Shown here piece after piece: positions 8,212 through 30,805 of a stretch of 64,000 nucleotides of DNA. The DNA is taken from positions 186,001 to 250,000 of IMG/VR virus record IMGVR_UViG_3300032236_001613. The stretch is one strand, 5' to 3'. Each line of letters starts with the position of its first letter. Position 1 is the first letter of the stretch. Below the pieces are notes generated by a model. That model was given only the letters and a program-made list of their open reading frames with translations. It searched no databases and was not told where the DNA came from. The position numbers were made by a program, and so were the translations under genes.

Positions 8212-8217
8212 AATAAT

Positions 8218-8321: not shown

Positions 8322-8407
8322 CATTGCAACGGTTCTACCATCGTTAATCGGTAGCGCATACTTGGATGCGAGAAAAGACCTTTTACGTCGACCAAGACTA
8401 ATTTTAT

Positions 8408-8485
8408 GCTCCCATAGTTTAGAAGGGCCCAGAACATCCGATTCTCAGTCGGAAAACGCAGGTTCGAATCCTGCCGGGAGCGCCA
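8408..8485 (+). tRNA. tRNA-Glu(CTC)
   Basis: TCCGA-TTCTCAG-TCGGA, CCA. Confidence 0.9.
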
Positions 8486-8529
8486 TTTTACTTAATAAAT
8501 ATTACAAATTTTAAAATAAAGGGTTACTA

Positions 8530-9135
8530 ATGAATATCTCAGATTACAAACAATTTATAAAAGATACAGGCACTTTAATACAAATTGGTGCTTTTGATGG
8601 TGTTGCTTGCGAAGACTCAGGGTTTAGAGAATTAGTACTTTATAAAAATTATAATGCTCATTTGGTTGAACCAGTTATAGATTTTTTTCAGGCGTTACAA
8701 AAAAACTATAGTAATGCTACGAGTAATGTTCGATTTTATAATCAAGCAATTTATACAGAAAATGGAGAATTACCTTTTTTTAAAAATTACACTGACCCAT
8801 TACAATGTACTTTTATAAGAGAAAATGTAGCTGAATATCATGGGCAAACAATACTAGTACAGTCACGAACTTTTGATACTTTTTTACAAGAAAATAACAT
8901 TAATGAAATCGAAGGATTATTTATTGATGCAGAAGGTGCCGAAGATACTATACTCCAACAGCTTTTTGAAAAAACGAATATCAGACCTAATATAATTCGT
9001 TATGAATGGCCACATTTGCCTGACCCTGTAAACACAATCAGATACATTATGTCTTATGGCTATACTGTTTCTCCCTGCATCTATTCAGGCGGTCGTGTTG
9101 ATAACATTTGTATTAAAAACGACCTTTTAGTTTAA
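8530..9135 (+). CDS. FkbM-family methyltransferase
   Basis: IQIGAFDG, LVEP, LFIDAEGAE, IRYE. Confidence 0.8.
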   Translation: MNISDYKQFIKDTGTLIQIGAFDGVACEDSGFRELVLYKNYNAHLVEPVIDFFQALQKNYSNATSNVRFYNQAIYTENGELPFFKNYTDPLQCTFIRENVAEYHGQTILVQSRTFDTFLQENNINEIEGLFIDAEGAEDTILQQLFEKTNIRPNIIRYEWPHLPDPVNTIRYIMSYGYTVSPCIYSGGRVDNICIKNDLLV

Positions 9136-9139
9136 TCTC

Positions 9140-9214
9140 GGTTCCATAGTATATCGGTTAATACATCGGCTTGTCACGTCGAAGTGAGGGGTTCGATTCC
9201 CCTTGGAACCGCCA
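9140..9214 (+). tRNA. tRNA-Asp(GTC)
   Basis: TCGGC-TTGTCAC-GTCGA, G73, CCA. Confidence 0.92.
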
Positions 9215-9219
9215 AATAT

Positions 9220-9295
9220 GCCATCTTAGCTCAGTTGGTAGAGCAGCAGACTGAAAATCTGCGTGTCCCCGGTTCAATTCCGGGAGATGGTACCA
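9220..9295 (+). tRNA. tRNA-Phe(GAA)
   Basis: GCAGA-CTGAAAA-TCTGC, CCA. Confidence 0.95.
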
Positions 9296-9299
9296 GTTA

Positions 9300-10020
9300 T
9301 TATGCCCATCTCCCGTGATCAAAGCTATTGTCAGGGTTTTTAAATTTTCTTAAAGATGATTCTATTCCGGTTACCGGCCACGATATGTGATTTTTATATA
9401 AATGATATATCAACATGTTTTGTGGAGTAAAACACACTCCTTCGGTTGTATATTGATCAATATAATTAAAAACAGACGAATATATGGACATGACATCGCT
9501 ATTGCCTATAGCAAACTGATCGTTTATCCCTGCTCCTTGTCTTTCGGTATCTGGTGTTATTATCATTGGTGTGTTTATACGGTCAAGGTATTCTTTAACT
9601 TTATTTAAAAATATGTAATTATTTAAGCATAAATCTGGCCTTGCTCTAATCACTAAATCATATTTGCCAAACATAGCTTCGTATTTTTGTCTAATATGAC
9701 CAACACGTTGTACGCCATTAAACATATACCAAGCATGAGAGGCCCATGTATGAGTACTATGAGGTCCGCCTAAAATATATGGTTTAGTTTCATCAAATAT
9801 AGGTTCGGGTACAATATCAAAATGAACTACATAATTATTTTTTGGTAAATTATTAACCAATTTAACATAAAACTCATGTTTGTTATTATTCCAACTAGGA
9901 GGAACCCCTTTATCAATGGAATTGTTAGAATTCCAAACATGTATAAACCAATCTAATTGATCATAGATCAAAATCCTTAGTAAACCTCGGTCGACCTGAT
10001 AATTCAATTGCTACTTTCAT
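9300..10020 (-). pseudogene. Frameshifted putative glycosyltransferase-like gene
   Basis: ATG 10020 gives MKVAIELSGRPRFTKDFDL*; the body (YDLVIRARPDL, INDQFAIG) is in another frame. Confidence 0.6.
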
Positions 10021-10045
10021 GCGACTATTTATTGTTAGAGTTTAT

Positions 10046-10122
10046 GGGGCCATAACTCAATAGGCTAGAGTAACTGGCTTTTAACCAGTAAGTTGTGAGT
10101 TCGAGCCTCACTGGCCCTACCA
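10046..10122 (+). tRNA. tRNA-Lys(TTT)
   Basis: ACTGG-CTTTTAA-CCAGT, CCA. Confidence 0.93.
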
Positions 10123-10129
10123 TTTCAAT

Positions 10130-10206
10130 GCCTCCGTAACTCAATGGATCAGAGTGCTTGGCTTCGAACCAAGAAGTTGGGAGTTCGAATCTCTCCGGGG
10201 GCGCCA
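10130..10206 (+). tRNA. tRNA-Arg(TCG)
   Basis: CTTGG-CTTCGAA-CCAAG, CCA. Confidence 0.93.
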
Positions 10207-10261
10207 TATTACGTGATAAGTAAACAGCAGACAGTTTACAGAAACACAAAGGAGATTTTTA

Positions 10262-10843
10262 ATGAATAAGTTTATTGTTTCGATTATTGCCGGACTTGCT
10301 TTTGCGAATCTTGCAGTAGCCGCGGATTATGCTGGTGTTGATTATCAAGATAAGCAGAAGGTCGACGTTGCTGAACAACACGATGTATTTGGTGCTTATA
10401 TTGGACATAAGTTTTCTGACACAGGATTCTCTGTTGAAGGACGCTTAGAAAATGAAATTGTGCATGATCCTAGTAAGCATGAAGGGCTCGTTCAGGTAAA
10501 AGGAACTTATAATGTACCTGCAGCAATTCTAGAAGTTTATCCTTATGTCAGCGCCACAGTTGGCTATAAGAGCGAAGCAACTAGTAATTTTGATTTTTAT
10601 GTTTTAGAAACGGGATTAAAGTATACCCAACTACCTAACGTAGAACTACGTTATGGACTACGTCTACGTACTCCGTTTAACGAAAGTTCGGTAGGCGAAG
10701 GCAACCATTACCGTACAGTAGAAAATAGCATCAACGCCGTTTATAAACTAGACAGTCATAATGGCGTTACTTTAAAATATGCACGTGAGCATGGTGATAG
10801 CAATTATCACACTTACGGTGTTGGTCTAGTACACTCCTTCTAA
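10262..10843 (+). CDS. Outer-membrane beta-barrel (porin-like) protein
   Basis: Signal peptide ending AVA, alternating beta-strand pattern, C-terminal YGVGLVHSF. Confidence 0.7.
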   Translation: MNKFIVSIIAGLAFANLAVAADYAGVDYQDKQKVDVAEQHDVFGAYIGHKFSDTGFSVEGRLENEIVHDPSKHEGLVQVKGTYNVPAAILEVYPYVSATVGYKSEATSNFDFYVLETGLKYTQLPNVELRYGLRLRTPFNESSVGEGNHYRTVENSINAVYKLDSHNGVTLKYAREHGDSNYHTYGVGLVHSF

Positions 10844-10847
10844 TCAT

Positions 10848-11297
10848 ATGGCAATAATTGCAGCCTTATTATGTCTGCTAGGCTGGTTTTTGCCATTAAC
10901 AGATTATCTAACTCCTAAATCAGGAGTAGGTTATTGGATGGGTATAGTAGGAGCGTCCATGATGCTCCTACTTTTAACTTATAGTCTGCGAAAACGTTAT
11001 AAATTCTTAGATTGGTCACCCCCACTTAGTAAGTGGTTTAATGCACACATATTTTTAGGTCTATATGGGCCTTTATTAATCTTATATCATTGCGGCTATC
11101 ATTTAGGTGCTTTTAATAGTAATATGGCTTTATGGTCGATGATTATAGTTGCTATTAGCGGAGTTATAGGTAGATTTTTATATAATCGTCCTCAATTTAA
11201 AAAAGCATTCGCTATTTGGCATGTGGCACATTTGCCTTTTGTTTTTATGTTAGCTGCAGCAGCAGTTATACATATACTTGCAGTAAACATATATTAA
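10848..11297 (+). CDS. His-containing multi-pass membrane protein (possible heme b ligands)
   Basis: Hydrophobic helices with WFNAHIFLG, LYH, WHVAHLP, IH. Confidence 0.55.
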   Translation: MAIIAALLCLLGWFLPLTDYLTPKSGVGYWMGIVGASMMLLLLTYSLRKRYKFLDWSPPLSKWFNAHIFLGLYGPLLILYHCGYHLGAFNSNMALWSMIIVAISGVIGRFLYNRPQFKKAFAIWHVAHLPFVFMLAAAAVIHILAVNIY

Positions 11298-11305
11298 AAA
11301 CGTAT

Positions 11306-11381
11306 GGTGGCTATAGTGTAGAGGTTCGCACACTAGGTTGTGGCCCTGGTAGTAAGGGTTCAATTCCCTTTAGTCACCCCA
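11306..11381 (+). tRNA. tRNA-His(GTG)
   Basis: G-1:C73, CTAGG-TTGTGGC-CCTGG, CCA. Confidence 0.92.
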
Positions 11382-11447
11382 AATTATTTTTATAATTAGT
11401 CTAGGAATATAGATAATTTTCTCTTATAATTATCTATATAATTTTTC

Positions 11448-11537
11448 GGAAGTGTGGCAGAGTCCGGTTTATTGCAACAGTCTTGAAAACTGTCGAGTTT
11501 AATCGCTCCGTAGGTTCGAATCCTACTACTTCCGCCA
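11448..11537 (+). tRNA. tRNA-Ser(TGA)
   Basis: ACAGT-CTTGAAA-ACTGT, long variable arm, G73, CCA. Confidence 0.95.
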
Positions 11538-11541
11538 AATT

Positions 11542-11599
11542 TAGGATGCTTCCAGCAAATAAAAAACTTTTCTTGAAAAAAAGCCAAAACAGCATCCTG
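11542..11599 (+). ncRNA. Anticodon-display RNA copy 1 (TGA stem-loop)
   Basis: AGGATGCT/AGCATCCT closing stem, CAGCAA, internal CTTTT-CTTGAAA-AAAAG. Confidence 0.7.
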
Positions 11600-11609
11600 T
11601 TTAATTTTA

Positions 11610-11704
11610 CCTCGATAGCACAGGTGTGCGGCTAGGTCTTATAAACCTGGGAGAGTTGCCAGATTAGCGACAACGGGAAGGATCGTTACCTTCATCGAGG
11701 ACCA
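11610..11704 (+). tRNA. Non-canonical tRNA with TAT anticodon and long variable arm
   Basis: CCTCGAT/ATCGAGG-A-CCA; 6-bp stem CTAGGT-CTTATAA-ACCTGG; T-loop ATCGTTA. Confidence 0.75.
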
Positions 11705-11712
11705 AATTTTAG

Positions 11713-11741
11713 TTGACTAATTGGTAAATGCGTGTTAAAGT
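11713..11741 (+). promoter_or_regulatory. Sigma70-type promoter with extended -10
   Basis: TTGACT-N17-(TGt)TAAAGT. Confidence 0.6.
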
Positions 11742-11751
11742 ATACGCATAC

Positions 11752-11780
11752 GCTAAGAAATTAGCAACGCTCTTTAATAA
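11752..11780 (+). promoter_or_regulatory. rrn-type boxB/boxA antitermination site
   Basis: GCTAA-GAAA-TTAGC hairpin followed by CGCTCTTTAATAA. Confidence 0.7.
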
Positions 11781-11795
11781 ATGAAAATAGTTTAT

Positions 11796-11871
11796 GGTCC
11801 CATCATCTAGAGGCCTAGGATATTGCCCTTTCACGGCAAGTACACGGGTTCAAATCCCGTTGGGACTACCA
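11796..11871 (+). tRNA. tRNA-Glu(TTC)
   Basis: TTGCC-CTTTCAC-GGCAA, CCA. Confidence 0.93.
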
Positions 11872-11908
11872 TACTTTTTAACTAAATATCTAGCTACGGA
11901 GAAATACT

Positions 11909-12364
11909 ATGAGCTTTCTAGACGTTTTCAAGAAAGAAAAAGACAAGCTAGTTGAAGAAGTTACTAAAGTCGAATCTACTGTTGTCGAAGAAGTAAAGAA
12001 AGTAGAAGCAGTGGCTGAACGAGCTGTTGCTGCTACCGAAGCAGTAGTTAAAGAAGTTGTAGTAGATTTTGAAAAGATTTTAACAGAAGCCGAGCAGGCA
12101 GCAGAAAGAACTCTACGCGATGTAGAGTTAGCTCGCCAGTTATACGAAAAAGCACTGGCTAGAGCAAATCTAGCAGCTAATAGAGCTAGAGAAGCTGCTG
12201 AACAAGCAGCAGCAAAAGCCCAAGAAGAAGCTGAAAGAGCCTTGTTGAGAGCTGAACGTGCTGCTAAGTTAGTGATTGGTATTTCAGGATCGGCGCCAGC
12301 TCCGGTTATTGCGCCTCCACCAATCGCTCCTGCTCCACCCCCTACAAGTAATACTACTCAATAA
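11909..12364 (+). CDS. Ala/Glu-rich coiled-coil protein with Pro-rich tail
   Basis: Composition; GGAG SD. Confidence 0.6.
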   Translation: MSFLDVFKKEKDKLVEEVTKVESTVVEEVKKVEAVAERAVAATEAVVKEVVVDFEKILTEAEQAAERTLRDVELARQLYEKALARANLAANRAREAAEQAAAKAQEEAERALLRAERAAKLVIGISGSAPAPVIAPPPIAPAPPPTSNTTQ

Positions 12365-12366
12365 TT

Positions 12367-12442
12367 AGTAGTGTAGCATAGTGGCTAATGCAGCACCTTC
12401 ATACGGTGTTTACCATCGGTTCGAGTCCGATCACTACTACCA
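12367..12442 (+). tRNA. tRNA-CAT (elongator Met or Ile2)
   Basis: GCACC-TTCATAC-GGTGT, paired 1:72, CCA. Confidence 0.88.
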
Positions 12443-12446
12443 GTTT

Positions 12447-12561
12447 TAGGATACCTACAGCAACATAAATTACTCATGCTAAGAGAGAGGTCGTTGGTTC
12501 AAGTCCAACCTAGTCTTAGGACTAGTAGCTCAGTTGGTAGAGCACTAAAATGTGTATCCTG
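12447..12561 (+). ncRNA. Anticodon-display RNA copy 2 containing a circularly permuted tRNA (GCT loop)
   Basis: AGGATAC/GTATCCT closing stem; order is anticodon loop, variable loop, T arm, loop-closed acceptor stem, D arm. Confidence 0.8.
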
Positions 12562-12570
12562 TTTTATTCG

Positions 12571-12648
12571 GCACCGGTGGCAGAGTGGCCCAATGCAAGA
12601 GTCTGCAAAACTCTAAAGTCGTCAGTTCGAATCTGACCCGGTGCTCCA
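12571..12648 (+). tRNA. tRNA-Cys(GCA)
   Basis: AGAGT-CTGCAAA-ACTCT, U73, CCA. Confidence 0.93.
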
Positions 12649-12697
12649 ATATACTTGTATAATAGATAACAAACATATATAATATATGAAATTATAC

Positions 12698-12773
12698 GGC
12701 CTCGTAGCCTAGTGGATCAGGCAACAGCCTTCTAAGCTGTCTTACACAGGTTCGAATCCTGTCGAGGTCGCCA
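12698..12773 (+). tRNA. tRNA-Arg(TCT)
   Basis: ACAGC-CTTCTAA-GCTGT, CCA. Confidence 0.93.
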
Positions 12774-12824
12774 AATTAATTAGTTTGACATCTTAATAAA
12801 GATAAGTAATAATATATCAACAAC

Positions 12825-12898
12825 GCGGAATTGGCATATGGGTTGTGCTCCAGCCTTCCAAGCTGGCTAAACGAGTTCGAGTCTCGTATTCCGCTCCA
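12825..12898 (+). tRNA. tRNA-Gly(TCC)
   Basis: CCAGC-CTTCCAA-GCTGG, U73, CCA; TTGACA at 12785 upstream. Confidence 0.93.
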
Positions 12899-12915
12899 AC
12901 TTTTAAGAGGCTCTA

Positions 12916-13134
12916 ATGAATAATCTCGGTGAATTAAGAGATTACGCTGTTGCTCGAGGATATAAAATCAAAGAGTTTAACGGATATGCACTACATATTG
13001 GGCGTGATACTTATACTATGTTAGCTGGAGAAATTTATCTCAATAAGATTAAAACTCCTACTAAAGAAGTTTTAAAGAAATTTACAGAAAAGTCTGCTGC
13101 AAAAAAAACTGCAGCAACAGCAAAGAAAAAATAG
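12916..13134 (+). CDS. Hypothetical basic protein
   Basis: ORF with GAGG SD. Confidence 0.55.
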   Translation: MNNLGELRDYAVARGYKIKEFNGYALHIGRDTYTMLAGEIYLNKIKTPTKEVLKKFTEKSAAKKTAATAKKK

Positions 13135-13140
13135 TTTTGT

Positions 13141-13221
13141 GCCCTAATGGTGAAATTGGTAGACACGCAAGATTTAGGTTCTTGTCTTCGGGTGGGGGTT
13201 CGAGTCCCTCTTAGGGCACCA
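13141..13221 (+). tRNA. tRNA-Leu(TAG)
   Basis: CAAGA-TTTAGGT-TCTTG, short variable arm, A73, CCA. Confidence 0.92.
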
Positions 13222-13228
13222 ATAGTTT

Positions 13229-13289
13229 TAGGATGCCTACAGCAAATTTAAAAATCAAAATGTCAATTTGAAAACAAATGCGCATCCTG
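13229..13289 (+). ncRNA. Anticodon-display RNA copy 3 (GTC stem-loop)
   Basis: AGGATGC/GCATCCT closing stem, CTACAGCAA, internal TCAAA-ATGTCAA-TTTGA. Confidence 0.7.
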
Positions 13290-13298
13290 TTTAAATAT

Positions 13299-13372
13299 GC
13301 CGGTGTAGTATAATGATAGTGCGACGGTCTCCAAAACCGTTAGTGGGAGTTTGATTCTCTCCACCGGTGCCA
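13299..13372 (+). tRNA. tRNA-Trp(CCA)
   Basis: ACGGT-CTCCAAA-ACCGT, CCA. Confidence 0.92.
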
Positions 13373-13384
13373 AATCGAGGACTT

Positions 13385-13699
13385 ATGACAAAAAAATTTA
13401 CATTTAATGATTTACAACCTAGAGTTGAAATGCTAATCGATGCTCTAGAAAATCGTGGCGCTTGTGCTAGCGGCTTACCATATGCTCCGGGCGTTAAAGC
13501 AGTTGCTGAAAACTATAAGTCAATGTTAGATTTTATAAGAAATAAAACAATTAACAAAGACGATCTCATCAACAGTTTATCAACAGCTAAAGCACTTGTA
13601 TTAGAACGAGCAGGTGGTAATCAAATTGATAGAATACGTAAAATTCTAGATGCTCTTGACTCCTATATGATGAGAGAGTATAATAAACAGAACAGTTGA
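13385..13699 (+). CDS. Hypothetical protein
   Basis: GAGG SD before ATG 13385. Confidence 0.55.
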   Translation: MTKKFTFNDLQPRVEMLIDALENRGACASGLPYAPGVKAVAENYKSMLDFIRNKTINKDDLINSLSTAKALVLERAGGNQIDRIRKILDALDSYMMREYNKQNS

Positions 13700-13721
13700 C
13701 CCTTCGTCTAGCGGTAGGACA
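13697..13721 (+). pseudogene. 5' remnant of a tRNA-Gln-like gene
   Basis: TGACCCT-TC-GTCT-AGCGGT-AGGAC-A: acceptor 5' strand plus Gln-type D arm, no 3' half. Confidence 0.65.
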
Positions 13722-13735
13722 AATATAAATACTAT

Positions 13736-14278
13736 ATGCTTAGTAAAAATATTAGTTCAGAGACAATCGAAAAATTAATTGATTCAGGTTTAAAAACCTC
13801 AGAAATTGCATCTAAGCTCGGTATCTCTACTGCAACAGTTTCTTATTGGAAAAAGAAACTCGGAAAAGAACTTAGTAATATCAAACATGATTGGAAAAAA
13901 ATTCAAGAAGCCCACAACAATGGGTCTACTTATTCTCAATTATACAAAGAGTTTGGTGTTACTAAAAGATCATTACAGAAAGCTAGAGATCGAGGAGATT
14001 TCAAGGTTAGACAGCGTAAAAAATTGTCAAAAGATGACGCTAAAATTAGAAAAAGAATTATATGCAGAGAAGCGTGGATGCGGTATTATAGTAGAAAAAA
14101 ATATCAAACTCCGGCTGATGAAGATATTAAAAAATTACAAGAATTTTATGCTAATTGCCCGGTTGGTTATGAAGTAGATCACATCATACCTATAAGTAAA
14201 GGCGGATTACATACATTGTCGAATCTTCAATACTTAACTATTAAAGAGAATAGACAAAAAGGTAATAAGATATTATAA
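13736..14278 (+). CDS. HTH-HNH homing endonuclease
   Basis: N-terminal SEIASKLGISTATVSYW; YEVDHIIPISKGGLHTLSNLQYLTIKENRQK. Confidence 0.88.
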   Translation: MLSKNISSETIEKLIDSGLKTSEIASKLGISTATVSYWKKKLGKELSNIKHDWKKIQEAHNNGSTYSQLYKEFGVTKRSLQKARDRGDFKVRQRKKLSKDDAKIRKRIICREAWMRYYSRKKYQTPADEDIKKLQEFYANCPVGYEVDHIIPISKGGLHTLSNLQYLTIKENRQKGNKIL

Positions 14279-14289
14279 TTTAACACTAT

Positions 14290-14363
14290 TGGGGAATCTT
14301 CTAACGGCAGGAAGGCGGACTTTGACTCCGCTAATCTAGGTTCGAATCCTAGTTCCCCAGCCA
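14290..14363 (+). tRNA. tRNA-Gln(TTG)
   Basis: GCGGA-CTTTGAC-TCCGC, U1:A72, CCA. Confidence 0.93.
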
Positions 14364-14369
14364 ATTTTT

Positions 14370-14443
14370 GCCCGATTAGCTCAAAAGTAGAGCGCACGAC
14401 TGATAATCGTAAGACAAAGGAGCGTTACCTTTATTGGGCACCA
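14370..14443 (+). tRNA. tRNA-Ile(GAT) with atypical D and T loops
   Basis: CACGA-CTGATAA-TCGTA; T-loop AGCGTTA; CCA. Confidence 0.85.
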
Positions 14444-14459
14444 TATAAATAAAGACAAT

Positions 14460-14535
14460 TGGAGTGTAGCTCAGCGGCAGTAGCGTTCGCCTGTTAAGCG
14501 AATGGTCGTAGGTTCGATCCCTACCACTCCAGCCA
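14460..14535 (+). tRNA. tRNA-Asn(GTT)
   Basis: TTCGC-CTGTTAA-GCGAA, CCA. Confidence 0.92.
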
Positions 14536-14543
14536 AATTTTAG

Positions 14544-14572
14544 TTGACCATTTTCGAAATGTTCAATATAAT
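14544..14572 (+). promoter_or_regulatory. Sigma70-type promoter
   Basis: TTGACC-N17-TATAAT. Confidence 0.7.
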
Positions 14573-14601
14573 ATATTCAAGTTAGTAAATAGTTTCGCGT
14601 T

Positions 14602-14675
14602 GGGGGATTGATGTAGTGATAGCCTGGGACCCTTGCACGGTCTTCGCGAGAGTTTGATTCTCTCATCCTCCACCA
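14602..14675 (+). tRNA. tRNA-Ala(TGC)
   Basis: G3:U70, GGACC-CTTGCAC-GGTCT, CCA. Confidence 0.9.
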
Positions 14676-14683
14676 AAGTTTGA

Positions 14684-14757
14684 TGCAGGGTAGTAGAACG
14701 GAACTACGCTAGGCTCATAACCTAGAGAACTTGGTTCGACTCCAAGCTCTGCTTCCA
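14684..14757 (+). tRNA. tRNA-Met(CAT), initiator-like
   Basis: 1:72 mismatch, CTAGG-CTCATAA-CCTAG, CCA. Confidence 0.85.
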
Positions 14758-14766
14758 GTTTGAAAC

Positions 14767-14854
14767 GGATGGTTGCCTGAGCGGTTAAAGGAGCGGGTTG
14801 CTAACCCGTCGCGGTGAAAACTGCGCATAGGTTCGAATCCTATACCATCCGCCA
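14767..14854 (+). tRNA. tRNA-Ser(GCT)
   Basis: GCGGG-TTGCTAA-CCCGT, long variable arm, CCA. Confidence 0.94.
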
Positions 14855-14876
14855 ATTTGTTATATAGAGGAATAAA

Positions 14877-15092
14877 ATGCAAGAGTATAAGCCGACCGGT
14901 AGTTATCGTATGTCACGTCAAGCCAAGCAGATGTTATCTAGGATCCAGGATCCTATTGAGAGAACTGAAGCAAAACGTTTAATTATTCAAAGTGAGTTGC
15001 ATCTTCAGTTGACTCCTAAGCGTAATCCGCTTGATAAGGATCGCACAACTAAAAATAGTCGCAATAATAAAGACGACTCGTTAGAAGAGTAA
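14877..15092 (+). CDS. Hypothetical protein
   Basis: GAGGA SD. Confidence 0.55.
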   Translation: MQEYKPTGSYRMSRQAKQMLSRIQDPIERTEAKRLIIQSELHLQLTPKRNPLDKDRTTKNSRNNKDDSLEE

Positions 15093-15102
15093 ATAAAGTT
15101 AG

Positions 15103-15178
15103 GCCTTCTAAGCATTGCTGGCGATGCACCGGATTTGTAACCCGGGGATAGTCTGTTCGATTCAGACAGAAGGCACCA
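15103..15178 (+). tRNA. tRNA-Thr(TGT)
   Basis: GCCTTCT/AGAAGGC acceptor, loop TTTGTAA, CCA. Confidence 0.85.
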
Positions 15179-15182
15179 GTTT

Positions 15183-15286
15183 AGACGGACCTGTAACCAT
15201 ATTCCGTCTCCGCCGGAGCGAAAACAGGATGGGCTGCTGCCGCGGGGTTTGACTGTTTCCTGACACACAAATAACAGTCATGTGTT
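15183..15286 (+). ncRNA. Pseudoknotted structured RNA between tRNAs
   Basis: AGACGGA/TCCGTCT with CCTGT/ACAGG; GACTGTT/AACAGTC with ACACA/TGTGT. Confidence 0.6.
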
Positions 15287-15289
15287 TAT

Positions 15290-15364
15290 GCCCGGTTAGC
15301 TCAGGGGTAGAGCGTCTGGTTTACATCCAGAATGTCGGCGGTTCGAAACCGTCACCGGGTACCA
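15290..15364 (+). tRNA. tRNA-Val(TAC)
   Basis: TCTGG-TTTACAT-CCAGA, CCA. Confidence 0.94.
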
Positions 15365-15378
15365 GTTTAGTAAGGTCA

Positions 15379-15454
15379 CGGGGTGTAGCTCAGTCTGGTT
15401 TAGAGCGTCCGCTTTGGGAGCGGAAGGTCCAAAGTTCGAATCTTTGTACCCCGA
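15379..15454 (+). tRNA. tRNA-Pro(TGG), no encoded CCA
   Basis: TCCGC-TTTGGGA-GCGGA, C1:G72, followed by AAAA. Confidence 0.9.
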
Positions 15455-15469
15455 AAAATTAAATTTACA

Positions 15470-15901
15470 ATGAAAATAAAAATTACAGATCAAGATCCTG
15501 ACCGTCATAATCACATAGAATATCCTATGGAGATTGGAGGTCAGGCTTTTGCACCTGTAAAAATCGAAAAAGAAAAAGATCTTATGCTAGCTGTCGCACA
15601 ACTTAGCGCACAGCAAGAATATGATCGCATCATGGAATCTGTTTCTATATTACAACGGCAAGCACAAGCACTACAAAGAAGAATGCATTTAACAGAGATG
15701 GTACATGCTGCTAAGTTTAGTTTTGTGCCAATTCCGGGTAAAAGTTATTGGTTAGTCGAAGATACTAAAAAATCTCAAATTATTTTAACCCCAATGGGTC
15801 CATCAGATTGGAGTTGTTTGGCGCCTGAAGAATATAAGTATGTTGCATATGTACGTTGTTTAGGCGATCAAACCTGGCAAGAAATTATAGAGCCCGATTA
15901 G
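15470..15901 (+). CDS. Conserved hypothetical protein (DUF2452-like)
   Basis: YPMEIG..AFAP, AKFSFVPIPGKSYWL, MGPSDW, DQTW. Confidence 0.6.
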   Translation: MKIKITDQDPDRHNHIEYPMEIGGQAFAPVKIEKEKDLMLAVAQLSAQQEYDRIMESVSILQRQAQALQRRMHLTEMVHAAKFSFVPIPGKSYWLVEDTKKSQIILTPMGPSDWSCLAPEEYKYVAYVRCLGDQTWQEIIEPD

Positions 15902-15968
15902 CTCAGTTGGTAGTAGCAACTGATTAGTAATCAGTAGGTCGGCGGTTCGAATCCGTCATCGGGCACCA
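15892..15968 (+). tRNA. tRNA-Thr(AGT)
   Basis: ACTGA-TTAGTAA-TCAGT, CCA; overlaps the upstream CDS end. Confidence 0.9.
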
Positions 15969-16004
15969 TATAAGAAAGATATATACATTTAAGGAGACCA
16001 TATA

Positions 16005-16250
16005 ATGAGTAAAGGAAGTAGAACTAGACCATTGTCGGTCACTAGAAAAACGTTCGATAGTAATTGGGATCGAATTTTTGGAAAAAAGGAATATGATATG
16101 CAAATTAAAGTAAAAGAAGGATCCTTAGGCAGTTGTCCTTGCGGACGCAGTCCGATTAATCGCTGTGTTGGATGGCACAATCTCAACGAAGAGCAGTTAG
16201 CCAAAGCAAAGGCCGATTATGCAGCTAAAGAAGCAAAGAAAACTGCATGA
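16005..16250 (+). CDS. CDGSH-like iron-sulfur domain protein
   Basis: CPCGRSPINRCVGWH. Confidence 0.65.
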   Translation: MSKGSRTRPLSVTRKTFDSNWDRIFGKKEYDMQIKVKEGSLGSCPCGRSPINRCVGWHNLNEEQLAKAKADYAAKEAKKTA

Positions 16251-16651
16251 TAGAAAAAGTTGTAGTTAACGGCACGTTTGATATACTGCACTTAGGGCAT
16301 ATTAGACTTTTAGAATATGCTCGTGAGCTTGGATGGTATTTACTTGTCTTAATTGATTCAGATCGTAGAGTACAAGAACTTAAAGGCCCTACACGGCCGG
16401 TTAACAATCAAGAAGAAAGAGCCGAAATGCTTCGTGCTATTAAGTATGTTGACGAAGTGCAAATTTTTGACAGTGATGATGAATTAAGAAACCTTATTAA
16501 AGAATATCAGCCGGATTTTATGGTTAAAGGTAGTGATTACAGAAATCGTCCTATTATAGGTAGCGAATATTGTAAGGAAATTAAGTTTTATGAGTATATG
16601 GAAGGCTATTCGACCACAAAAAAAATATCAAGTATTATTGATAGGCGATAG
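16247..16651 (+). CDS. ADP-heptose synthase adenylyltransferase domain (RfaE/HldE domain II)
   Basis: NGTFDILHLGH, LKGPTRP, VKGSDY, YSTT. Confidence 0.9.
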   Translation: MIEKVVVNGTFDILHLGHIRLLEYARELGWYLLVLIDSDRRVQELKGPTRPVNNQEERAEMLRAIKYVDEVQIFDSDDELRNLIKEYQPDFMVKGSDYRNRPIIGSEYCKEIKFYEYMEGYSTTKKISSIIDRR

Positions 16652-17384
16652 TTGTACTGACGTTTATCAATACGGAACTGTGGATAGAATTAGTCCAGAA
16701 GCACCTGTACCTATTTTTAAACATAGTCATACAGAAACTAGGCCAGGAATGGCAGCAAACGTACAGTTGAATCTTGAATCGTTTGGAATCGAAGTTACAG
16801 CATTGCTAGGGCCTGGATCAGTAAAGACTAGGCTAGTTGATCTTCGTAGTCGGCAACATGTTCTTAGAATCGATGATGATGCTAACGCCACTCCTATGTT
16901 ATTCGATTCTAAACTTGATCTAACACACTATCATGCGGTAGTGTTTAGTGATTACAATAAAGGATGGGTTAGTTACGAATTAGTTGAAGTAGTACGACAA
17001 AAGTTCGGTGGACCAATTTTTATTGATACTAAAAAACAAGATCTAGCAAAATTTTGGGACTGTTATGTTAAAGTTAACGAAACTGAGTACAATAACAGAT
17101 GGTCTATCAATAATAAATTAATTGTTACATTAGGTAATCGAGGTGCAGTTTATAAAGAACTTGGTCGCAAAGAAGTAGAATTTCCACCAGACACAGTCGA
17201 GGTAGTAGATGTATGTGGTGCTGGAGACACATTTTTAGCAGCCATAGTTGCAGAATACTTAAATAGTAGAGATATTAATAGTGCAATAAAGTTTGCTAAC
17301 CATGCTAGTGCTATAAGTGTACAGCATAGCGGAGTTTATGCATTAACTCGAGAAGATATTAAGAAGATTAAAAAGCGGGTATGA
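16590..17384 (+). CDS. Heptose-7-phosphate kinase domain (RfaE/HldE domain I, PfkB family)
   Basis: RISPEAPVP, SDYNKG, DVCGAGDTF. Confidence 0.9.
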   Translation: MSIWKAIRPQKKYQVLLIGDSCTDVYQYGTVDRISPEAPVPIFKHSHTETRPGMAANVQLNLESFGIEVTALLGPGSVKTRLVDLRSRQHVLRIDDDANATPMLFDSKLDLTHYHAVVFSDYNKGWVSYELVEVVRQKFGGPIFIDTKKQDLAKFWDCYVKVNETEYNNRWSINNKLIVTLGNRGAVYKELGRKEVEFPPDTVEVVDVCGAGDTFLAAIVAEYLNSRDINSAIKFANHASAISVQHSGVYALTREDIKKIKKRV

Positions 17385-17397
17385 TGTAATCGAACCT
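17375..17397 (+). pseudogene. 5' remnant of a tRNA-Gly-like gene
   Basis: GCGGGTA-TG-ATGT-AATCG-AACCT with no 3' half. Confidence 0.5.
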
Positions 17398-17431
17398 TTG
17401 ACTTATATAAATAAGTATATAGGAGTACGAT

Positions 17432-17914
17432 ATGAAATATTGCCCGAAGTGTAATAATGAACATAATAAACCTGGAATGTTTTGCTCAAGATCATGTGCA
17501 AATAGTCGTGTTTGGTCAGAAGAGACCAATTTAAAAAGATCAATAACATCAAAGGGTAATTCCCCGTGGAATAAAGGTATATCCACCGGAATTAACGAAG
17601 AAAGAAATAAAGTTATACGATTAGTTCGATTGGAAAAAAATAGAAATAAATTTTTAAACGGGTTGATAACCGAAAGATCGGCAATAAGGAAACATCTTAC
17701 AAGAGAACATGGTTATTTCTGTTCTATTTGTTCTATTTCAGAATGGCAAGGACAAAAAATTACATTACAAGTAGATCATATAGATGGAAACGCAGGAAAC
17801 AATTTACCTACAAATCTAAGATTAATTTGTCCGAATTGTCATAGTCAAACTAAAACATTTGGAGCAAGAAATAAAGGTTCAGGAAGAGCATCTAGAGGTC
17901 TTCCGTTAAGTTAA
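17432..17914 (+). CDS. HNH homing endonuclease with N-terminal zinc finger
   Basis: CPKC..FCSRSC, PWNKG, LQVDHIDGNAGNNLPTNLRLICPNCH. Confidence 0.9.
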   Translation: MKYCPKCNNEHNKPGMFCSRSCANSRVWSEETNLKRSITSKGNSPWNKGISTGINEERNKVIRLVRLEKNRNKFLNGLITERSAIRKHLTREHGYFCSICSISEWQGQKITLQVDHIDGNAGNNLPTNLRLICPNCHSQTKTFGARNKGSGRASRGLPLS

Positions 17915-17924
17915 ATAATATATC

Positions 17925-17999
17925 GCGGGATTAATTCAGTGGTAGAATGCAACTTTGCCAAAGTTGATGTCACCGGTTCGAGCCCGGTATCCCGCTCCA
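17925..17999 (+). tRNA. tRNA-Gly(GCC)
   Basis: CAACT-TTGCCAA-AGTTG, U73, CCA. Confidence 0.94.
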
Positions 18000-25039: not shown

Positions 25040-25446
25040 AAGTAGGACTTAGCTATAGTCGTTGTATACTTGATATTGTCGAAGGACGAGTAAGCGAAGA
25101 CGATGTATTAGTTATTATTACTCGTACTAACTTCGATCCAACTAATGACAATGAATGGAATGAAATTTGGGGACATTATGTATTTTCAGAGTGGCACCAG
25201 TATGATTACTCCGACAAAGAGCATAACGAGTTATTTAGAAATGTAACTTTAAGTTTGCACAAGAATGGAAAATTGCACCAACCAAGAAAATTCGGCGTAC
25301 ATCCGCATCGAAGATCGGAATATTGGTTGGAGACTGTACTTGTTTCTACAGATTTAGAAAAAAATGAGGCAGCTAAAAAGGCGTGGAATAACTTTAAAGT
25401 GATAGCAGGGTTAACTAACATAAATTTAGATAAGGAATATAATTAA
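25036..25446 (+). CDS. Hypothetical protein
   Basis: Coupled [14 protein letters not shown]...GKLHQPR. Confidence 0.6.
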
Positions 25447-26045
25447 TGATTACTAATAATTTGGTACCGATTGTAATTGAAAAAACAGGATCAGGCGAAC
25501 GAGCGTTTGATATCTATAGTCGTTTGCTTAACGAACGTATTGTTTTTTTAAATGGGCCAGTGCACGACCATAGTGCTAACTTAATTGTTGCACAAATGCT
25601 TCATCTCGAAAGTGTTGATTGCGATAAAGACATTAGTTTTTATATTAATAGTCCTGGTGGAGTAGTAACTGCAGGTATGAGCATTTATGATGTCATGCAG
25701 TTTATTAAGCCCGATGTAGCTACATACGTTATGGGACAAGCATGTAGTATGGGCAGTTTGTTAGCTCAAGCCGGGTCACCTGGAAAGCGATTTATGCTGC
25801 CATACGCAAGGCATATGATCCATCAGCCAAGCGGCGGCGCTAGTGGGCAAGCAACTGACATGCAAATTCAAGTTGAAGAAATCCTTAAGATGAAGAAAGA
25901 ACTTACCGGAATTTACGTTAAACACAATAGTAAGGGTAAAACTTATGAGCAACTTGTTTCTGATATGGAACGAGATAAGTTTATGAGCGCACAAGAAGCA
26001 CTTGATTACGGACTTATTGATCAAATTATTGAAAAGCGTAGTTAA
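25446..26045 (+). CDS. clpP: ATP-dependent Clp protease proteolytic subunit
   Basis: [34 protein letters not shown]. Confidence 0.97.
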
Positions 26046-26102
26046 TTTTAATCTGCTAAATAGTAGAAAAGCTCAAAGCTTTTCTACTATACAGGTTAAA
26101 AT

Positions 26103-27140
26103 ATGGTAAAAGTATTCGAATCAGCACCAACAAACTTTAGCGGTGATCAAATTAATGGTGGAACGATCACTAATTTTGCTAGTACAGGTATTAAGGATAA
26201 TGCTTCTAGCGTTACACTTGTAGTTACAGATGGTAAAATTACAGTTCCGTCGATGTCAGTTAACACCATTGATGGTAACGTTACGGTAAGAGGTGATGTT
26301 AAAGTTTATGGTGTTTTAGATGCTGGCTTTATACGAACTACCGAATTAATTGCAAATCAAAGATACGAAAAACAATACTTAGAATTTGCACCCCCAGAAG
26401 GAAATGCTGTAGGATGTGGGCTATTATGGGTTAGCGGAACCTCTAAACAGTTTATTTTAAGAAATAATCCTGAAAGATTCTATTCAACCGAAAGTATCGA
26501 CATACCTGCAATGCAATCTTATTGTATCGAAGCAGTACCTGTTCTTAGCTACGATTCGCTGGGAAGAAATGTTGTTAATAGTAATCTACAAACTGTCGGG
26601 CTTTTAAGGAATCTAGCAACAACAGGCAACTTAACAGTTGATAATTACATACATTATAGCGGAACTTCAAATAGATTAGGGTTAGGCACGGAAAATCCTA
26701 ATGCTCTATTAAGTGTTTTTGATTTTGTACATGGTGTTGAAGTTGTTGTTGATAGTAATGTTTCAAATGGATACGGTAAAGTTGGAACCTTTAATACAAA
26801 AGGTTTCGAACTGGTTACCGACGATACTGCAAGAATTTCCATTTCAGAAACTGGTAATATTACACTTGGGCAAGAACAAAAAGACAGTACTATTATTAGA
26901 GCTTACGGCAAACTTTCCGTTGGTGTAAAAAACCCAACTGAGCAATTTGAAGTAGCAGGAAACGTTAAATTTGGTAATAGACTCTTTACTAACGGAAACT
27001 CTGCCCCACAGTCAGGAGTTTATCAAGTAGGCGATATTGTTTGGAATACTAACCCTACTCCAGGAACATATGTTGGGTGGGTTTGCCTTGTTAGCGGTTC
27101 CCCAGGTGTGTGGAACGGGTTTGGACTAATTGCCTCGTAA
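26103..27140 (+). CDS. Putative virion structural (fibre-like) protein
   Basis: LGLGTENP repeats, GDIVWNTNP..GWVC tail; TAAATA upstream. Confidence 0.55.
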   Translation: MVKVFESAPTNFSGDQINGGTITNFASTGIKDNASSVTLVVTDGKITVPSMSVNTIDGNVTVRGDVKVYGVLDAGFIRTTELIANQRYEKQYLEFAPPEGNAVGCGLLWVSGTSKQFILRNNPERFYSTESIDIPAMQSYCIEAVPVLSYDSLGRNVVNSNLQTVGLLRNLATTGNLTVDNYIHYSGTSNRLGLGTENPNALLSVFDFVHGVEVVVDSNVSNGYGKVGTFNTKGFELVTDDTARISISETGNITLGQEQKDSTIIRAYGKLSVGVKNPTEQFEVAGNVKFGNRLFTNGNSAPQSGVYQVGDIVWNTNPTPGTYVGWVCLVSGSPGVWNGFGLIAS

Positions 27141-27318
27141 AATGCATTTTTTAAAAATTCTTTTTATCTATTGTTTTCTTGCTATTCTTTCGATATGGGT
27201 AACTGTTCAAGTGTTTATAATGTGTCGTTTTAGAAAAAAAGAATCAGCATTATTAAACGAGATCGTTAACGATATTAAAGAAATAAAAAAGAAATTAGAA
27301 TTACTTAAAGAAGAATAG
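27130..27318 (+). CDS. Small membrane protein
   Basis: One TM segment plus coiled tail. Confidence 0.4.
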   Translation: MPRKMHFLKILFIYCFLAILSIWVTVQVFIMCRFRKKESALLNEIVNDIKEIKKKLELLKEE

Positions 27319-27380
27319 CGGTCTACGGCGTCGTCCCGCTTTACAAATTCCGCTGCCTATGTTACATTATTTCATAGGAG
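27317..27380 (+). promoter_or_regulatory. Candidate cis-regulatory RNA upstream of queD
   Basis: AGCGG/CCGCT stem, CGGCG/CGCTG pseudoknot, CCTATG/CATAGG hairpin over the SD. Confidence 0.5.
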
Positions 27381-27386
27381 TTTAAA

Positions 27387-27917
27387 ATGTATACTAGTAC
27401 AAAGTTTTTTAAAGAAATAGGTCCCTGCGCTTATCGCAATTGGAAATCAGATACAGATTGTTATATGCTTCACGGCTATGACCGCAGTTTTAAGTTTGTG
27501 TTTGGTGCTAGCCATCTAGACAAGCAAGGGTTTGTTGTAGATTTTGGCGGGCTTAAAGCTATTAAGCGACAACTAGAAGACTGGTTTGATCATACTGTAA
27601 TTTTACAAGCCGATGATCCCTTAGTGAATACTTTTAGAGAGCTAACAGCTAAAGGTCACTGCAAATTGCAGACTTTTCCGCTTATTAGCTGCGAAGGACT
27701 TGCAGAGTATGTAGGCGAGTATGTTGACTATATGCTCCATGAAGCAAATGGAGGACGTAATTGGGTCGTTAGTTGCGAAATGATCGAAGCTGAAAAGAAT
27801 AGCGCCATTTATAGTGTAAGACCTGATGATCCTGATCGTATGCTTTGGCACGATTTGCAAGCACTTAACGTCAGTATGGAAGAGGAAGCCGGTAAAATTA
27901 AATTTGAGGATCTGTAA
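27387..27917 (+). CDS. queD: 6-carboxytetrahydropterin synthase (QueD/PTPS family)
   Basis: C..LHGY, VVDFG.LK, FDH, CEGLA. Confidence 0.8.
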
Positions 27918-28849
27918 TGAAAAAAATTTTAGTTACCGGTGGTGCCGGATTTTTAGGCAGTCATCTGTGTGATCGTTTAGTAACACAAGGTCATCACGTA
28001 CTTTGTGTTGATAATTATTTTACAGGTAGTAAGAAAAATATTGAGCCGTTACTTCGATATCCTAATTTTGAAGTAATTCGTCAGGATGTTTGCTTTCCTC
28101 TCTACGTTGAAGTGGATGAGATTTATAATCTTGCTTGTCCTGCAAGTCCTGTATATTATCAACATGATCCTATACAGACCACCAAGACCAGTATCCTAGG
28201 CGCATACCATCTATTAGGGCTAGCCAAACGTACAGGTGCAAAGATTTTGCAAGCATCTACTAGCGAAGTGTACGGCGATCCTTTAGAACATCCACAGCGT
28301 GAAGAATACTGGGGTAATGTTAATCCGATTGGAATTCGTAGTTGCTACGATGAAGGTAAACGTGCAGCAGAAACATTATTTTTTGACTATCATAGACAGC
28401 ATAATGTTCGTATTAAGGTTGCACGTATTTTTAATACGTACGGCCCACGTATGTCAGCAAATGATGGTCGAGTAGTCAGCAACTTTATTGTTCAGGCATT
28501 AAACGGTCAAGCTATTACTATATACGGTGATGGAAGCCAAACACGTAGTTTCTGCTATGTCAGCGATCTAGTAGATGGGTTGATAGCGTTAATGAACACT
28601 AAAGATTCCATTACAGGGCCAATTAACCTGGGTAATCCTAGAGAATTTACTATGCTAGAACTAGCAGAAAAAGTTATTGCAGAAACACAAACTACTAGCA
28701 AACTAGTTTTTAAACCATTGCCCGGCGATGATCCAAAACAACGCCGACCGGATATTACTCGAGCGCAGTTATTCCTAGATTGGCATCCGGAGATTTCTTT
28801 AGAAGATGGATTAGTTGATACTGTTAAATATTTTAAGACCGTGATTTGA
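27917..28849 (+). CDS. UDP-glucuronate decarboxylase (extended SDR)
   Basis: [40 protein letters not shown]. Confidence 0.93.
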
Positions 28850-28909
28850 CTTTAAGGTAAAACCAATATATACTGTATCTATTATATAATCAACAGGATA
28901 AATAGGTAT

Positions 28910-29131
28910 ATGAAACTAAAAGAAATTGAAAATTACTACAACAATCTTACTGAATCTCAGCTGTTCGAACAAATTGATCCGGCTAACGATAGCCCAATTT
29001 CAACACAGGATTTAGTAAAGATTGTTAAAACTAATCGTGCTAACCAATGGCAGGAATTGCCAGTAGATGACAATAGTTTCGATGCATATATTGATTCGTT
29101 AGTGGGTAATAATAATGGCAAACGAAGTTAA
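28910..29131 (+). CDS. Small acidic protein, possible antitoxin
   Basis: Overlaps the downstream RelE-like gene. Confidence 0.45.
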   Translation: MKLKEIENYYNNLTESQLFEQIDPANDSPISTQDLVKIVKTNRANQWQELPVDDNSFDAYIDSLVGNNNGKRS

Positions 29132-29540
29132 ATTTGAGGTGTGCCCTCTGTGGAATACTACAGCAGCCGAACTATTACCAAATAATAAAAAATTAGCCGA
29201 GAAGATCAAAGCTTTTAGAGATTTTAAAAAACAAAACCCTATCGCTGCCTTTGGTGGTAGCGATACTATGTTTGTTGGTGCAGGACCTATTGCAAAGGCG
29301 TTAGGAGAACGTGCAAGACACGCTCATTTAACACAAGATATATGTATAGTATATTCTGTATCTGGTAAAAATCCTACAGTCATTAAACTGTATGGCCTTT
29401 TTAGACACAAAGATATCGGCACCGGTGATACTCCAAATATTAGAAAACAGCAATCCGCTGCTGATAGGATGAAAGATCAAACTTGGAATGATTCCGTTCT
29501 TGAAGGTAAAAAAAGAAAATCTTATGCTCGAAAAAAATAA
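29115..29540 (+). CDS. RelE/YafQ-like ribonuclease
   Basis: RHAHLTQDICIVY...IKLYGLFRH resembles the YafQ C-terminal pattern. Confidence 0.55.
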   Translation: MANEVKFEVCPLWNTTAAELLPNNKKLAEKIKAFRDFKKQNPIAAFGGSDTMFVGAGPIAKALGERARHAHLTQDICIVYSVSGKNPTVIKLYGLFRHKDIGTGDTPNIRKQQSAADRMKDQTWNDSVLEGKKRKSYARKK

Positions 29541-29724
29541 TCGGTGGATTATTACGCCTGAAGAAGATCCTGTAACTGGAGAAGTTATCATCACTTTTCC
29601 TCTAGAGTTATTAGAACAAGTCGGATGGATGGAAGGAGACACACTTAATTGGAGTGTGCGAGATGACGGATCAGTTTATCTAACTAAAAAAGAAGAAATT
29701 GACAAAAAGTCAGAAAGTTGTTAA
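29524..29724 (+). CDS. AbrB/MazE-like DNA-binding protein
   Basis: ITFPLELLEQVGWMEGDTLNW...GSVYL. Confidence 0.7.
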   Translation: MLEKNNRWIITPEEDPVTGEVIITFPLELLEQVGWMEGDTLNWSVRDDGSVYLTKKEEIDKKSESC

Positions 29725-29779
29725 ACTATGATCAAATCCGCATTGTAATAGTGCAATGCGATTACTTCCTGAGGTAGTC

Positions 29780-30805
29780 ATGAAACGAATTGGATTTGCA
29801 TGTAAGTGGATTGATCGTCCTGATCAATGCGACGGTATCTCTGCTAAAGATGATGCTAAACAATACAATACTGCTGGCACTACTGTAGCATGGCTTAATC
29901 GGCAAACTCGAGAAGTAGCCGAACAGAAGCTATGGGACATTATGCAATATAACATTGCAGCAACTAAAAGACTCGTTCAACGAGTAGGAGACTTAGATAA
30001 TAGTCTTCGAATGGTTAGACTTTCTAGTGATTTGCTTCCTGTTTATACCGAATCTAGTTGGGCTTACTTTTGGCGACAGTCTTATGTTAGGCAGTATTGT
30101 GAAAGCAAGTTTGCTGAAGTAGGAAATATTGCTCGTGATCGTAATGTTAGGCTTTCTTTTCACCCTGGACAGTTTACTGTTCTTGCTAGCGACAATCCAG
30201 ATATCGTTGAACGTAGTATAGAAGAATTTGAGTATCATGCTGACATGGCTAGATGGATGGGCTACGGTCAAAAGTTTCAAGACTTTAAAATTAATGTTCA
30301 TATTGCCGGTCGTTTAGGTGCACAAGGCATTCGAGATGTTTATCCGCGTTTGAGCACCGAAGCACGTAACTGTATTACTATTGAAAATGAGGAAATGTCA
30401 CATGGGCTGGATGATTGTTTGTCTCTTGGTGAGTTGTTGCCTGTGGTGCTCGATATCCACCATCACTGGATCCGAGAGGGAGAGTATATCGAGCTCGGAG
30501 ATATTCGTGTCCAACGTGTGCTGGACTCTTGGCGTGGGGTGCGCCCTACTCTCCATTATTCTGTTAGCCGTGAAGATTGTCTTATTAATCATTCACCCGA
30601 ACATTTGCCTGATGCTAGGTTGTTATTAGAAGCTGGACACAAAAAACAAAAGCTCCGAGCACATAGTGACTTTTATTGGAATGATTCCGTCAACAAATGG
30701 GCTTTAAGCTTTTTAGAAAATTTCGATATCATGTGCGAGGCAAAGGGCAAGAATCTTGCTAGCTTTGCCTTACACAATCAAGCAAAACAATTAGACTACC
30801 TTTAA
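29780..30805 (+). CDS. uvsE: UV damage endonuclease
   Basis: RIGFACK, RLSS, SFHPGQF, IENEE, LDIHHH, RAHSD, EAKGK. Confidence 0.92.
   Translation: MKRIGFACKWIDRPDQCDGISAKDDAKQYNTAGTTVAWLNRQTREVAEQKLWDIMQYNIAATKRLVQRVGDLDNSLRMVRLSSDLLPVYTESSWAYFWRQSYVRQYCESKFAEVGNIARDRNVRLSFHPGQFTVLASDNPDIVERSIEEFEYHADMARWMGYGQKFQDFKINVHIAGRLGAQGIRDVYPRLSTEARNCITIENEEMSHGLDDCLSLGELLPVVLDIHHHWIREGEYIELGDIRVQRVLDSWRGVRPTLHYSVSREDCLINHSPEHLPDARLLLEAGHKKQKLRAHSDFYWNDSVNKWALSFLENFDIMCEAKGKNLASFALHNQAKQLDYL

Follow-up and report, generated by a model that had tools for sequence, protein, structure and literature searches.

A conserved pseudoknot RNA preceding queD-like genes of uncultured freshwater phages competes with a ribosome-binding-site hairpin and is a strong candidate for a new riboswitch class

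The window analyzed here is a stretch of 64,000 nucleotides, corresponding to bases 186001-250000 of a 328-kb IMG/VR jumbo-phage record. All features described below lie on the plus strand and are numbered from the first base of the window. A small open reading frame (ORF) of 62 amino acids with a hydrophobic N-terminus (27130-27318) is separated by a 68-nt gap from a gene of 176 amino acids (27387-27917), which belongs to the PTPS/QueD family, as indicated by matches to Pfam PTPS (3.5e-13) and PHROG 2389 QueD-like (1.5e-33); the nearest solved structure is the CPH4 synthase 7v0f (3e-06). An NAD-dependent nucleotide-sugar epimerase/dehydratase gene (27917-28849) follows, and because its start overlaps the queD stop, it is probably in the same operon. 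The same pairing of genes is seen in the closest relative (L003, whose protein is 89% identical) and in two further loci, L019 and L025, and a homologous small ORF precedes the element in L003 and L019.

The gap contains the elements of an RNA structure. The 5' strand of a first helix, P1 (AGCGG, 27317-27321), pairs with its 3' strand (CCGCU, 27336-27340), and the TAG stop of the upstream ORF (27316-27318) overlaps the first two bases of P1. Between the strands of P1 lie a loop L1 (UCUAC, 27322-27326), the 5' strand of a second helix P2 (GGCGUCG, 27327-27333), and a short loop L2 (UC, 27334-27335). The loop L3 (UUACAAAUUC, 27341-27350) then leads to the 3' strand of P2 (CGCUGCC, 27351-27357), so that P1 and P2 form an H-type pseudoknot. 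[quoted passage not shown] The initial annotation had described P1, a loop-to-tail pseudoknot, and the SD hairpin, and all of these features were confirmed to be present. When folded as a single sequence, however, the region was unremarkable, with a minimum free energy (MFE) of -18.6 kcal/mol and a z of -1.36, and 18 of 200 shuffles folded as well.

Comparison with other sequences gave much stronger evidence. Nearly every match has the same ~75-nt element, and the element was found directly before a QueD-like gene in more than 300 viral and metagenomic loci. Two DNA patterns recovered 53 and at least 120 viral contigs, and of 156 copies, 144 lay directly before a QueD-like ORF, whereas the others were cut by contig ends, frameshifted, or had one small ORF in between. 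A profile search found one copy in the 328-kb genome (E 9e-15), and BLAST found exactly one copy in each of five other phage records of 214-354 kb. Many loci were found through patterns taken from the element itself, which inflates its apparent conservation; we therefore drew 80 loci from each of three QueD-like subfamilies by protein similarity alone, and the element was present in 69, 68, and 61 of them, several of the misses being contig ends or divergent copies. Such protein-ascertained sets reduce this bias but do not remove it. The core of the element was 81.5% identical between loci whose proteins were under 40% identical and whose coding DNA was 48.5% identical. Megablast of 26000-30000 and blastn of the element gave no match among GenBank phages. 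BLAST of the element against about 1,200 bacterial genomes, a sample drawn from the order of a Burkholderiales genome and the classes of a Taibaiella and a Salinibacterium genome, gave only chance-level partial matches of at most 15 bits, as compared with 50-85 bits for true copies.

Base pairing in the pseudoknot was supported by covariation. In an alignment of protein-ascertained loci (A3), three of the five P1 pairs showed compensatory changes (AU/UA/GU; GC/CG/UA/UG; CG/AU/UA) and 99% of cells were paired. For P2, G27327, G27328, C27329, and G27330 pair with C27357, C27356, G27355, and U27354, respectively, the last being a wobble pair; U27331 and C27353 form an invariant mismatch, and C27332 and G27333 pair with G27352 and C27351. 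The fourth pair alone showed A:U 52, G:C 39, G:U 14, and U:A 9 in alignment A1, and P2 pair 25:50 of A3 showed UA 50, GC 23, AU 22, CG 6, and GU 5. In the wider set, the whole outer half of P2 was swapped, as in GGCG/CGCC, GGCA/UGCC, GGCU/AGCC, GCAU/AUGC, ACGC/GUGU, GGUG/CACC, GAUG/CAUC, and GACG/CGUC, and the inner CA/UG changed together to CG/CG in the subgroup of the window and to UA/UA in two loci (L032 and L189). On A1, 95.7% of cells were paired and the covariation score was 0.154 against at most 0.122 for slid controls; on A3, the score was 0.224 against at most 0.058, and 0 of 500 shuffles reached the score in either case. The outer two P2 pairs are imperfect in about a third of sequences of the window's type, and because alignments of the variable L1 and of 7- versus 8-position P2 variants are imperfect, the per-column counts for A3 understate pairing in the outer P2.

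This register of P2 lies 3 nt further 3' and is longer than that of the initial annotation, which had paired 27326-27330 (CGGCG) with 27351-27355 (CGCTG). The earlier register is possible in the window, but it is only 84% paired across the family and fails in the nine GGCU/AGCC sequences. An alternative fold that had been proposed to use a second CCGCT (27350-27354) is not conserved, since this motif is peculiar to the subgroup of the window (consensus CUGCY). Unpaired residues at the P1/P2 junction, namely U27331, C27335, A27345, A27347, U27349, and C27350, never vary, and C27335 lies immediately 5' of the P1 3' strand. By contrast, L1 begins N-C-U and varies in length from 3 to 10 nt. P3 was 99.4% paired in A1 but almost invariant, with compensatory variants seen only in locus L098 (CCAUUG/CGAUGG), the L004 group (CCUGAUG/CAUCAGG), and a few single pairs.

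Three different expression platforms were found downstream of the same pseudoknot. Type A, which is that of the window, has the CCUAUG/CAUAGG hairpin, whereas types B and C have longer helices in which the end of the P2 3' strand plus the next bases pair with the start-codon region, for example UGCCAUUG with CAAUGGCA. In 224 of 230 unique platforms, the MFE fold paired at least two bases of the P2 3' strand with the SD-AUG region. In the window, the last two bases of P2 (C27356 and C27357) are also the first two bases of P3; P3 is worth -6.2 kcal/mol and drops to 0.0 without the two shared C-G pairs, and the P2 duplex is worth about -7.4 kcal/mol. The pseudoknot and the initiation-region helix thus exclude each other and are of similar strength, which is the design of a switch: with the pseudoknot formed, the ribosome site is free (ON), and with it unformed, the hairpin closes (OFF). 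This ON polarity is inferred with regard to its operation in vivo.

Promoter-like sequences also differed among the platform types. Types B and C commonly have a near-consensus sigma-70 promoter (TTGACC, 17 nt including TG, then TATAAT) that ends 7-8 nt before P1, which would place the pseudoknot at the 5' end of the mRNA. A TAnnnT box in that position was found in 15 of 36 type B elements and in 19 of 30 other elements, which include type C, as compared with 39 of 176 type A elements and 34 of 242 background controls, so that upstream -10 boxes were enriched only where an internal one is missing. In type A, a promoter-like site lies inside the element instead. A promoter scan of the window found TTTACA-17-TACATT with a TG (9 of 12), consisting of a -35-like hexamer at 27340-27345, a TG at 27360-27361 in the P3 stem, and a -10-like hexamer at 27363-27368 in the P3 loop; in type A, the -35-like hexamer reads TTTACA, TATACA, or TTGACA. 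Across 116 type A loops, the -10-like box had the conservation profile of a true -10, with T and A in 116/116, the final T in 114/116, and weaker middle positions (T66/A83/A82%). A search for similar promoters elsewhere in the genome was uninformative. Transcripts starting at this putative internal promoter would begin in the 3' arm of P3, lack both the pseudoknot and the anti-SD arm, and be translated without control, and if it is the main promoter, most queD mRNA in type A would escape the switch. Covariation within type A sequences nevertheless shows that the pseudoknot is under RNA-level selection there, and it would therefore act on read-through transcripts from the upstream genes, which all lie on the same strand.

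In element-bearing loci, the commonest neighbors were GTP cyclohydrolase I (FolE; 68 loci) and a QueE-like radical-SAM protein (57 loci), and other frequent neighbors were phosphoribosyltransferase, MazG, HIT, cytidylyltransferase-like, kinase-like, glycosyltransferase, and epimerase genes. The genome of the window has FolE and QueE-like genes about 41 kb away and no QueC or TGT/DpdA detectable by Pfam, and the five other jumbo records showed no TGT/DpdA and at most marginal QueC-model hits. A FolE/QueD/QueE-only set is what Cellulophaga phage phiST has, and that phage replaces guanine by 7-deazaguanine (PMC10516641). The association with que/fol genes in homologs, which the initial annotation had named as a check, therefore holds. 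All of these QueD-like proteins, however, have HGY and AY where canonical QueD has HGH and AH, so that two of the three zinc-binding histidines are missing and neither the exact reaction nor the pathway assignment is certain.

Taken together, window 27317-27380 is one copy of a conserved cis-acting leader RNA of phage queD-like genes, and we are highly confident of its structural part, that is, a conserved pseudoknot competing with the initiation-region helix. Most likely the pseudoknot is the aptamer of a riboswitch, in which a small molecule from or near the GTP-to-7-deazaguanine pathway would stabilize it and switch on translation of queD and the genes behind it. In the absence of ligand, protein, or expression data, we consider this complete account, including the small-molecule effector, only somewhat more likely than not. 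The arguments for a small-molecule effector are indirect, and include the invariance of the unpaired junction residues, the constancy of the element across divergent proteins and phage backgrounds, association with a single pathway, and the joining of a conserved sensor-like domain to interchangeable platforms, which is what riboswitch classes look like. The invariant C27335 recalls the specificity cytosine of preQ1-I riboswitches (PMC10622847) and suggests, by inference only, a ligand with a guanine-like face, such as a pterin, 7-deazaguanine, or guanine. An ON switch before a biosynthetic gene is unusual if the ligand is the end product, and ON polarity argues for a substrate or demand signal rather than end-product feedback. 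The stems are also unusually invariant, in that two P1 pairs never change and P3 changes in only a handful of sequences, which would fit protein recognition or recent spread as well. The proposal of the initial annotation, a riboswitch-like H-type pseudoknot that does not match preQ1-I well and acts as a translational switch, is supported, with correction of the P2 register and of the polarity, since the pseudoknot frees the ribosome site.

The same RNA switch may instead operate without a small-molecule ligand, an alternative that we regard as less likely but that cannot be excluded. In one version, the pseudoknot folds first during transcription and gives a short window of translation before the more stable SD/AUG-sequestering helix forms, as a kinetic timer like that of the MS2 maturation-gene leader; in the other, a phage or host protein binds the pseudoknot, much as gp32 appears to bind the pseudoknot of its own T4 leader, although here the gene encodes an enzyme and the pseudoknot strand directly competes with the initiation-region helix. 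The location of the pseudoknot at the very 5' end in types B and C suits folding order, and the near-invariant stems suit sequence-specific protein recognition. On the other hand, the element is constant across three platform types and across phage backgrounds whose QueD-like proteins share under 40% identity, which a shared small molecule explains more simply than a co-evolving protein does, and a kinetic timer would not need invariant unpaired junction residues.

It is doubtful that the element is a divergent preQ1-I riboswitch (RF00522) that binds preQ1, preQ0, or a close 7-deazaguanine. An H-type pseudoknot with a 5-bp P1, an invariant unpaired C directly 5' of the P1 3' strand, where preQ1-I places its specificity cytosine, conserved adenines in L3, and a location before a que gene would favor such membership. 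However, searches with Rfam 15 gave only tRNAs and chance hits, with no family matching at gathering score on the whole window, at E<=10 on 27250-27450, or at E<=5 on six loci representing types A, B, and C. The dimensions also disagree: P2 spans 7-10 positions and carries an invariant U-C mismatch instead of being 3-4 bp, L2 is 1-3 nt, L3 is 10-11 nt (N3-A-N-AAAUUC) and not poly-A, and the aptamer is 41 nt in the window and up to 48 nt elsewhere rather than 30-36 nt. In addition, the SD lies 19 nt beyond P2 and the P2 3' strand is the anti-initiation-region strand, so that the pseudoknot is the ON state, whereas preQ1-I sequesters the SD in P2 (PMC10622847).

A reading in which the region holds only ordinary DNA signals, with a weak terminator for the upstream ORF followed by a sigma-70 promoter for queD, is very unlikely. 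The promoter scan, the conserved -10-like box, and the UUU that follows P1 are compatible with it, but a terminator scan called nothing at 27317-27345, and P1 is a 5-bp stem with a 14-nt loop and a UUU-A tail. Promoter spacers are not normally invariant as this one is, long-range Watson-Crick covariation between loop and spacer has no DNA-level explanation, types B and C keep the pseudoknot without the internal promoter, and the element is single-copy and specific to one gene. A mobile promoter/stem-loop cassette of the T4 PeSL type, suggested by very high nucleotide identity across otherwise different contigs and by a stem-loop next to a promoter-like site, is least likely of all, since there is one copy per genome in six large records, 144 of 156 copies lie directly before a QueD-like ORF, the element does not flank both sides of a cassette, and compensatory changes show selection on pairing.

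No description of a queD or PTPS RNA motif or of a phage 7-deazaguanine riboswitch was found in literature searches, and the element appears to be undescribed. Phage riboswitches are rare, and most are copies of host classes, whereas this element looks phage-specific, is abundant, and is tied to 7-deazaguanine DNA modification, a major anti-restriction strategy. It remains possible, although we put this at somewhat less than even, that it represents a new riboswitch class, confined so far to uncultured freshwater phages, in which a 41-48-nt pseudoknot binds a guanine-faced metabolite of the GTP-to-7-deazaguanine route and switches on translation of the DNA-hypermodification genes of the phage, combined in one platform type with an internal promoter so that only read-through transcripts are regulated. 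Candidate ligands would be dihydroneopterin triphosphate or CPH4 as feed-forward signals, or CDG, preQ0, or 7-deazaguanine, and it would be the first riboswitch dedicated to phage DNA modification. If it binds a metabolite, it adds a new small aptamer fold and a new ligand-RNA pair, shows that phages meter their own DNA-modification pathway, and offers a compact ON switch usable as a sensor. Even without a ligand, it is a clean natural case of one RNA domain wired to three different translation-control platforms, one of which overlaps a promoter, and is useful for studying how regulatory RNA and promoter signals share sequence.

Among known systems other than preQ1-I, the leaders of T4 gene e (lysozyme) and I-TevI resemble the type A platform, in that a hairpin buries the ribosome-binding site on long read-through transcripts and a promoter, which in type A is inferred from sequence only, is placed so that its own transcripts lack the 5' arm and are translated (PMC3014915). 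The T4 promoters are gp55 late promoters (TATAAATA), whereas the putative one here looks like a sigma-70 extended -10, and T4 has no conserved pseudoknot competing with the hairpin. In SAM-II, SAM-V, and other H-type pseudoknot riboswitches, the whole aptamer is likewise a classic H-type pseudoknot of roughly 45-50 nt with conserved loop residues suited to triplex contacts, and control is translational. The element described here differs from them in its conserved residues and in its gene association, which is with queD rather than with methionine/SAM genes, and whereas ligand binding sequesters the SD in those classes, here it would release it.

We found that the pseudoknot is joined to a different expression platform in the variants of types B (loci L506, L460, L402 and similar) and C (loci L434, L539, L442, L447 and similar), in which a near-consensus sigma-70 promoter (TTGACC-17-TGnTATAAT) commonly ends 7-8 nt before the pseudoknot helix P1. 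In these variants, a long helix pairs the 3' strand of the second pseudoknot helix, P2, with the AUG and second codon (UGCCAU/AUGGCA), which probably constrains the N-terminus of the protein to Met-Ala. In contrast, close relatives with QueD 84-86% identical to that of the window (loci L004-L006 and L026-L028) lack the pseudoknot, and the region lies inside an upstream ORF. These relatives nevertheless keep GCUGCC and a Shine-Dalgarno (SD) hairpin with compensatory changes (CCUGAUG/CAUCAGG, with a loop of 22 nt), and this looks like loss of the sensor with retention of the hairpin. The element was not found in loci whose QueD is 68-73% identical (L007-L012 and L033-L050, mostly from marine samples): in the ones inspected (L007-L012), the QueD-like gene abuts or overlaps the upstream gene and there is no room for the element, and the profile search found no element in any of these loci. 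The element seems to be confined to the freshwater lineages.

With regard to the surrounding genes, the region in the window is flanked by homologues of a ClpP protease (25446-26045; Pfam 6.4e-78) and a UvdE UV-damage endonuclease (29756-30805; 1.6e-38), and a block of 26 tRNA genes lies on the + strand at 8127-17996, in this 328-kb phage record with a CheckV completeness of 92%. In the flanks of element-bearing loci, recurrent neighbours are phosphoribosyltransferase, MazG, HIT, cytidylyltransferase-like and APS-kinase-like genes, two glycosyltransferase families, and an NAD-dependent epimerase, which suggests that the deazapurine is processed at the nucleotide level, or that sugars are added to it.

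The QueD-like protein encoded at 27387-27917 (P0001), as well as all of its QueD-like relatives in alignment A2, has C-x3-H-G-Y and A-Y where canonical QueD (PDB 7v0f) has H-G-H and A-H. Two of the three zinc-binding histidines are replaced by tyrosine, a feature that is invariant across subfamilies, and the enzyme may not be a standard CPH4 synthase. Outside the window, FolE and a QueE-like radical-SAM gene (loci L002 and L341) lie together about 41 kb downstream of queD, at 254672-255196 and 256180-257031 of contig C1 of the phage record (G000). Pfam searches found no QueC and no TGT/DpdA in this record, and five other jumbo records showed no TGT/DpdA and only marginal QueC-model hits in two of them. 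The set resembles that of Cellulophaga phage phiST, which makes 7-deazaguanine DNA.
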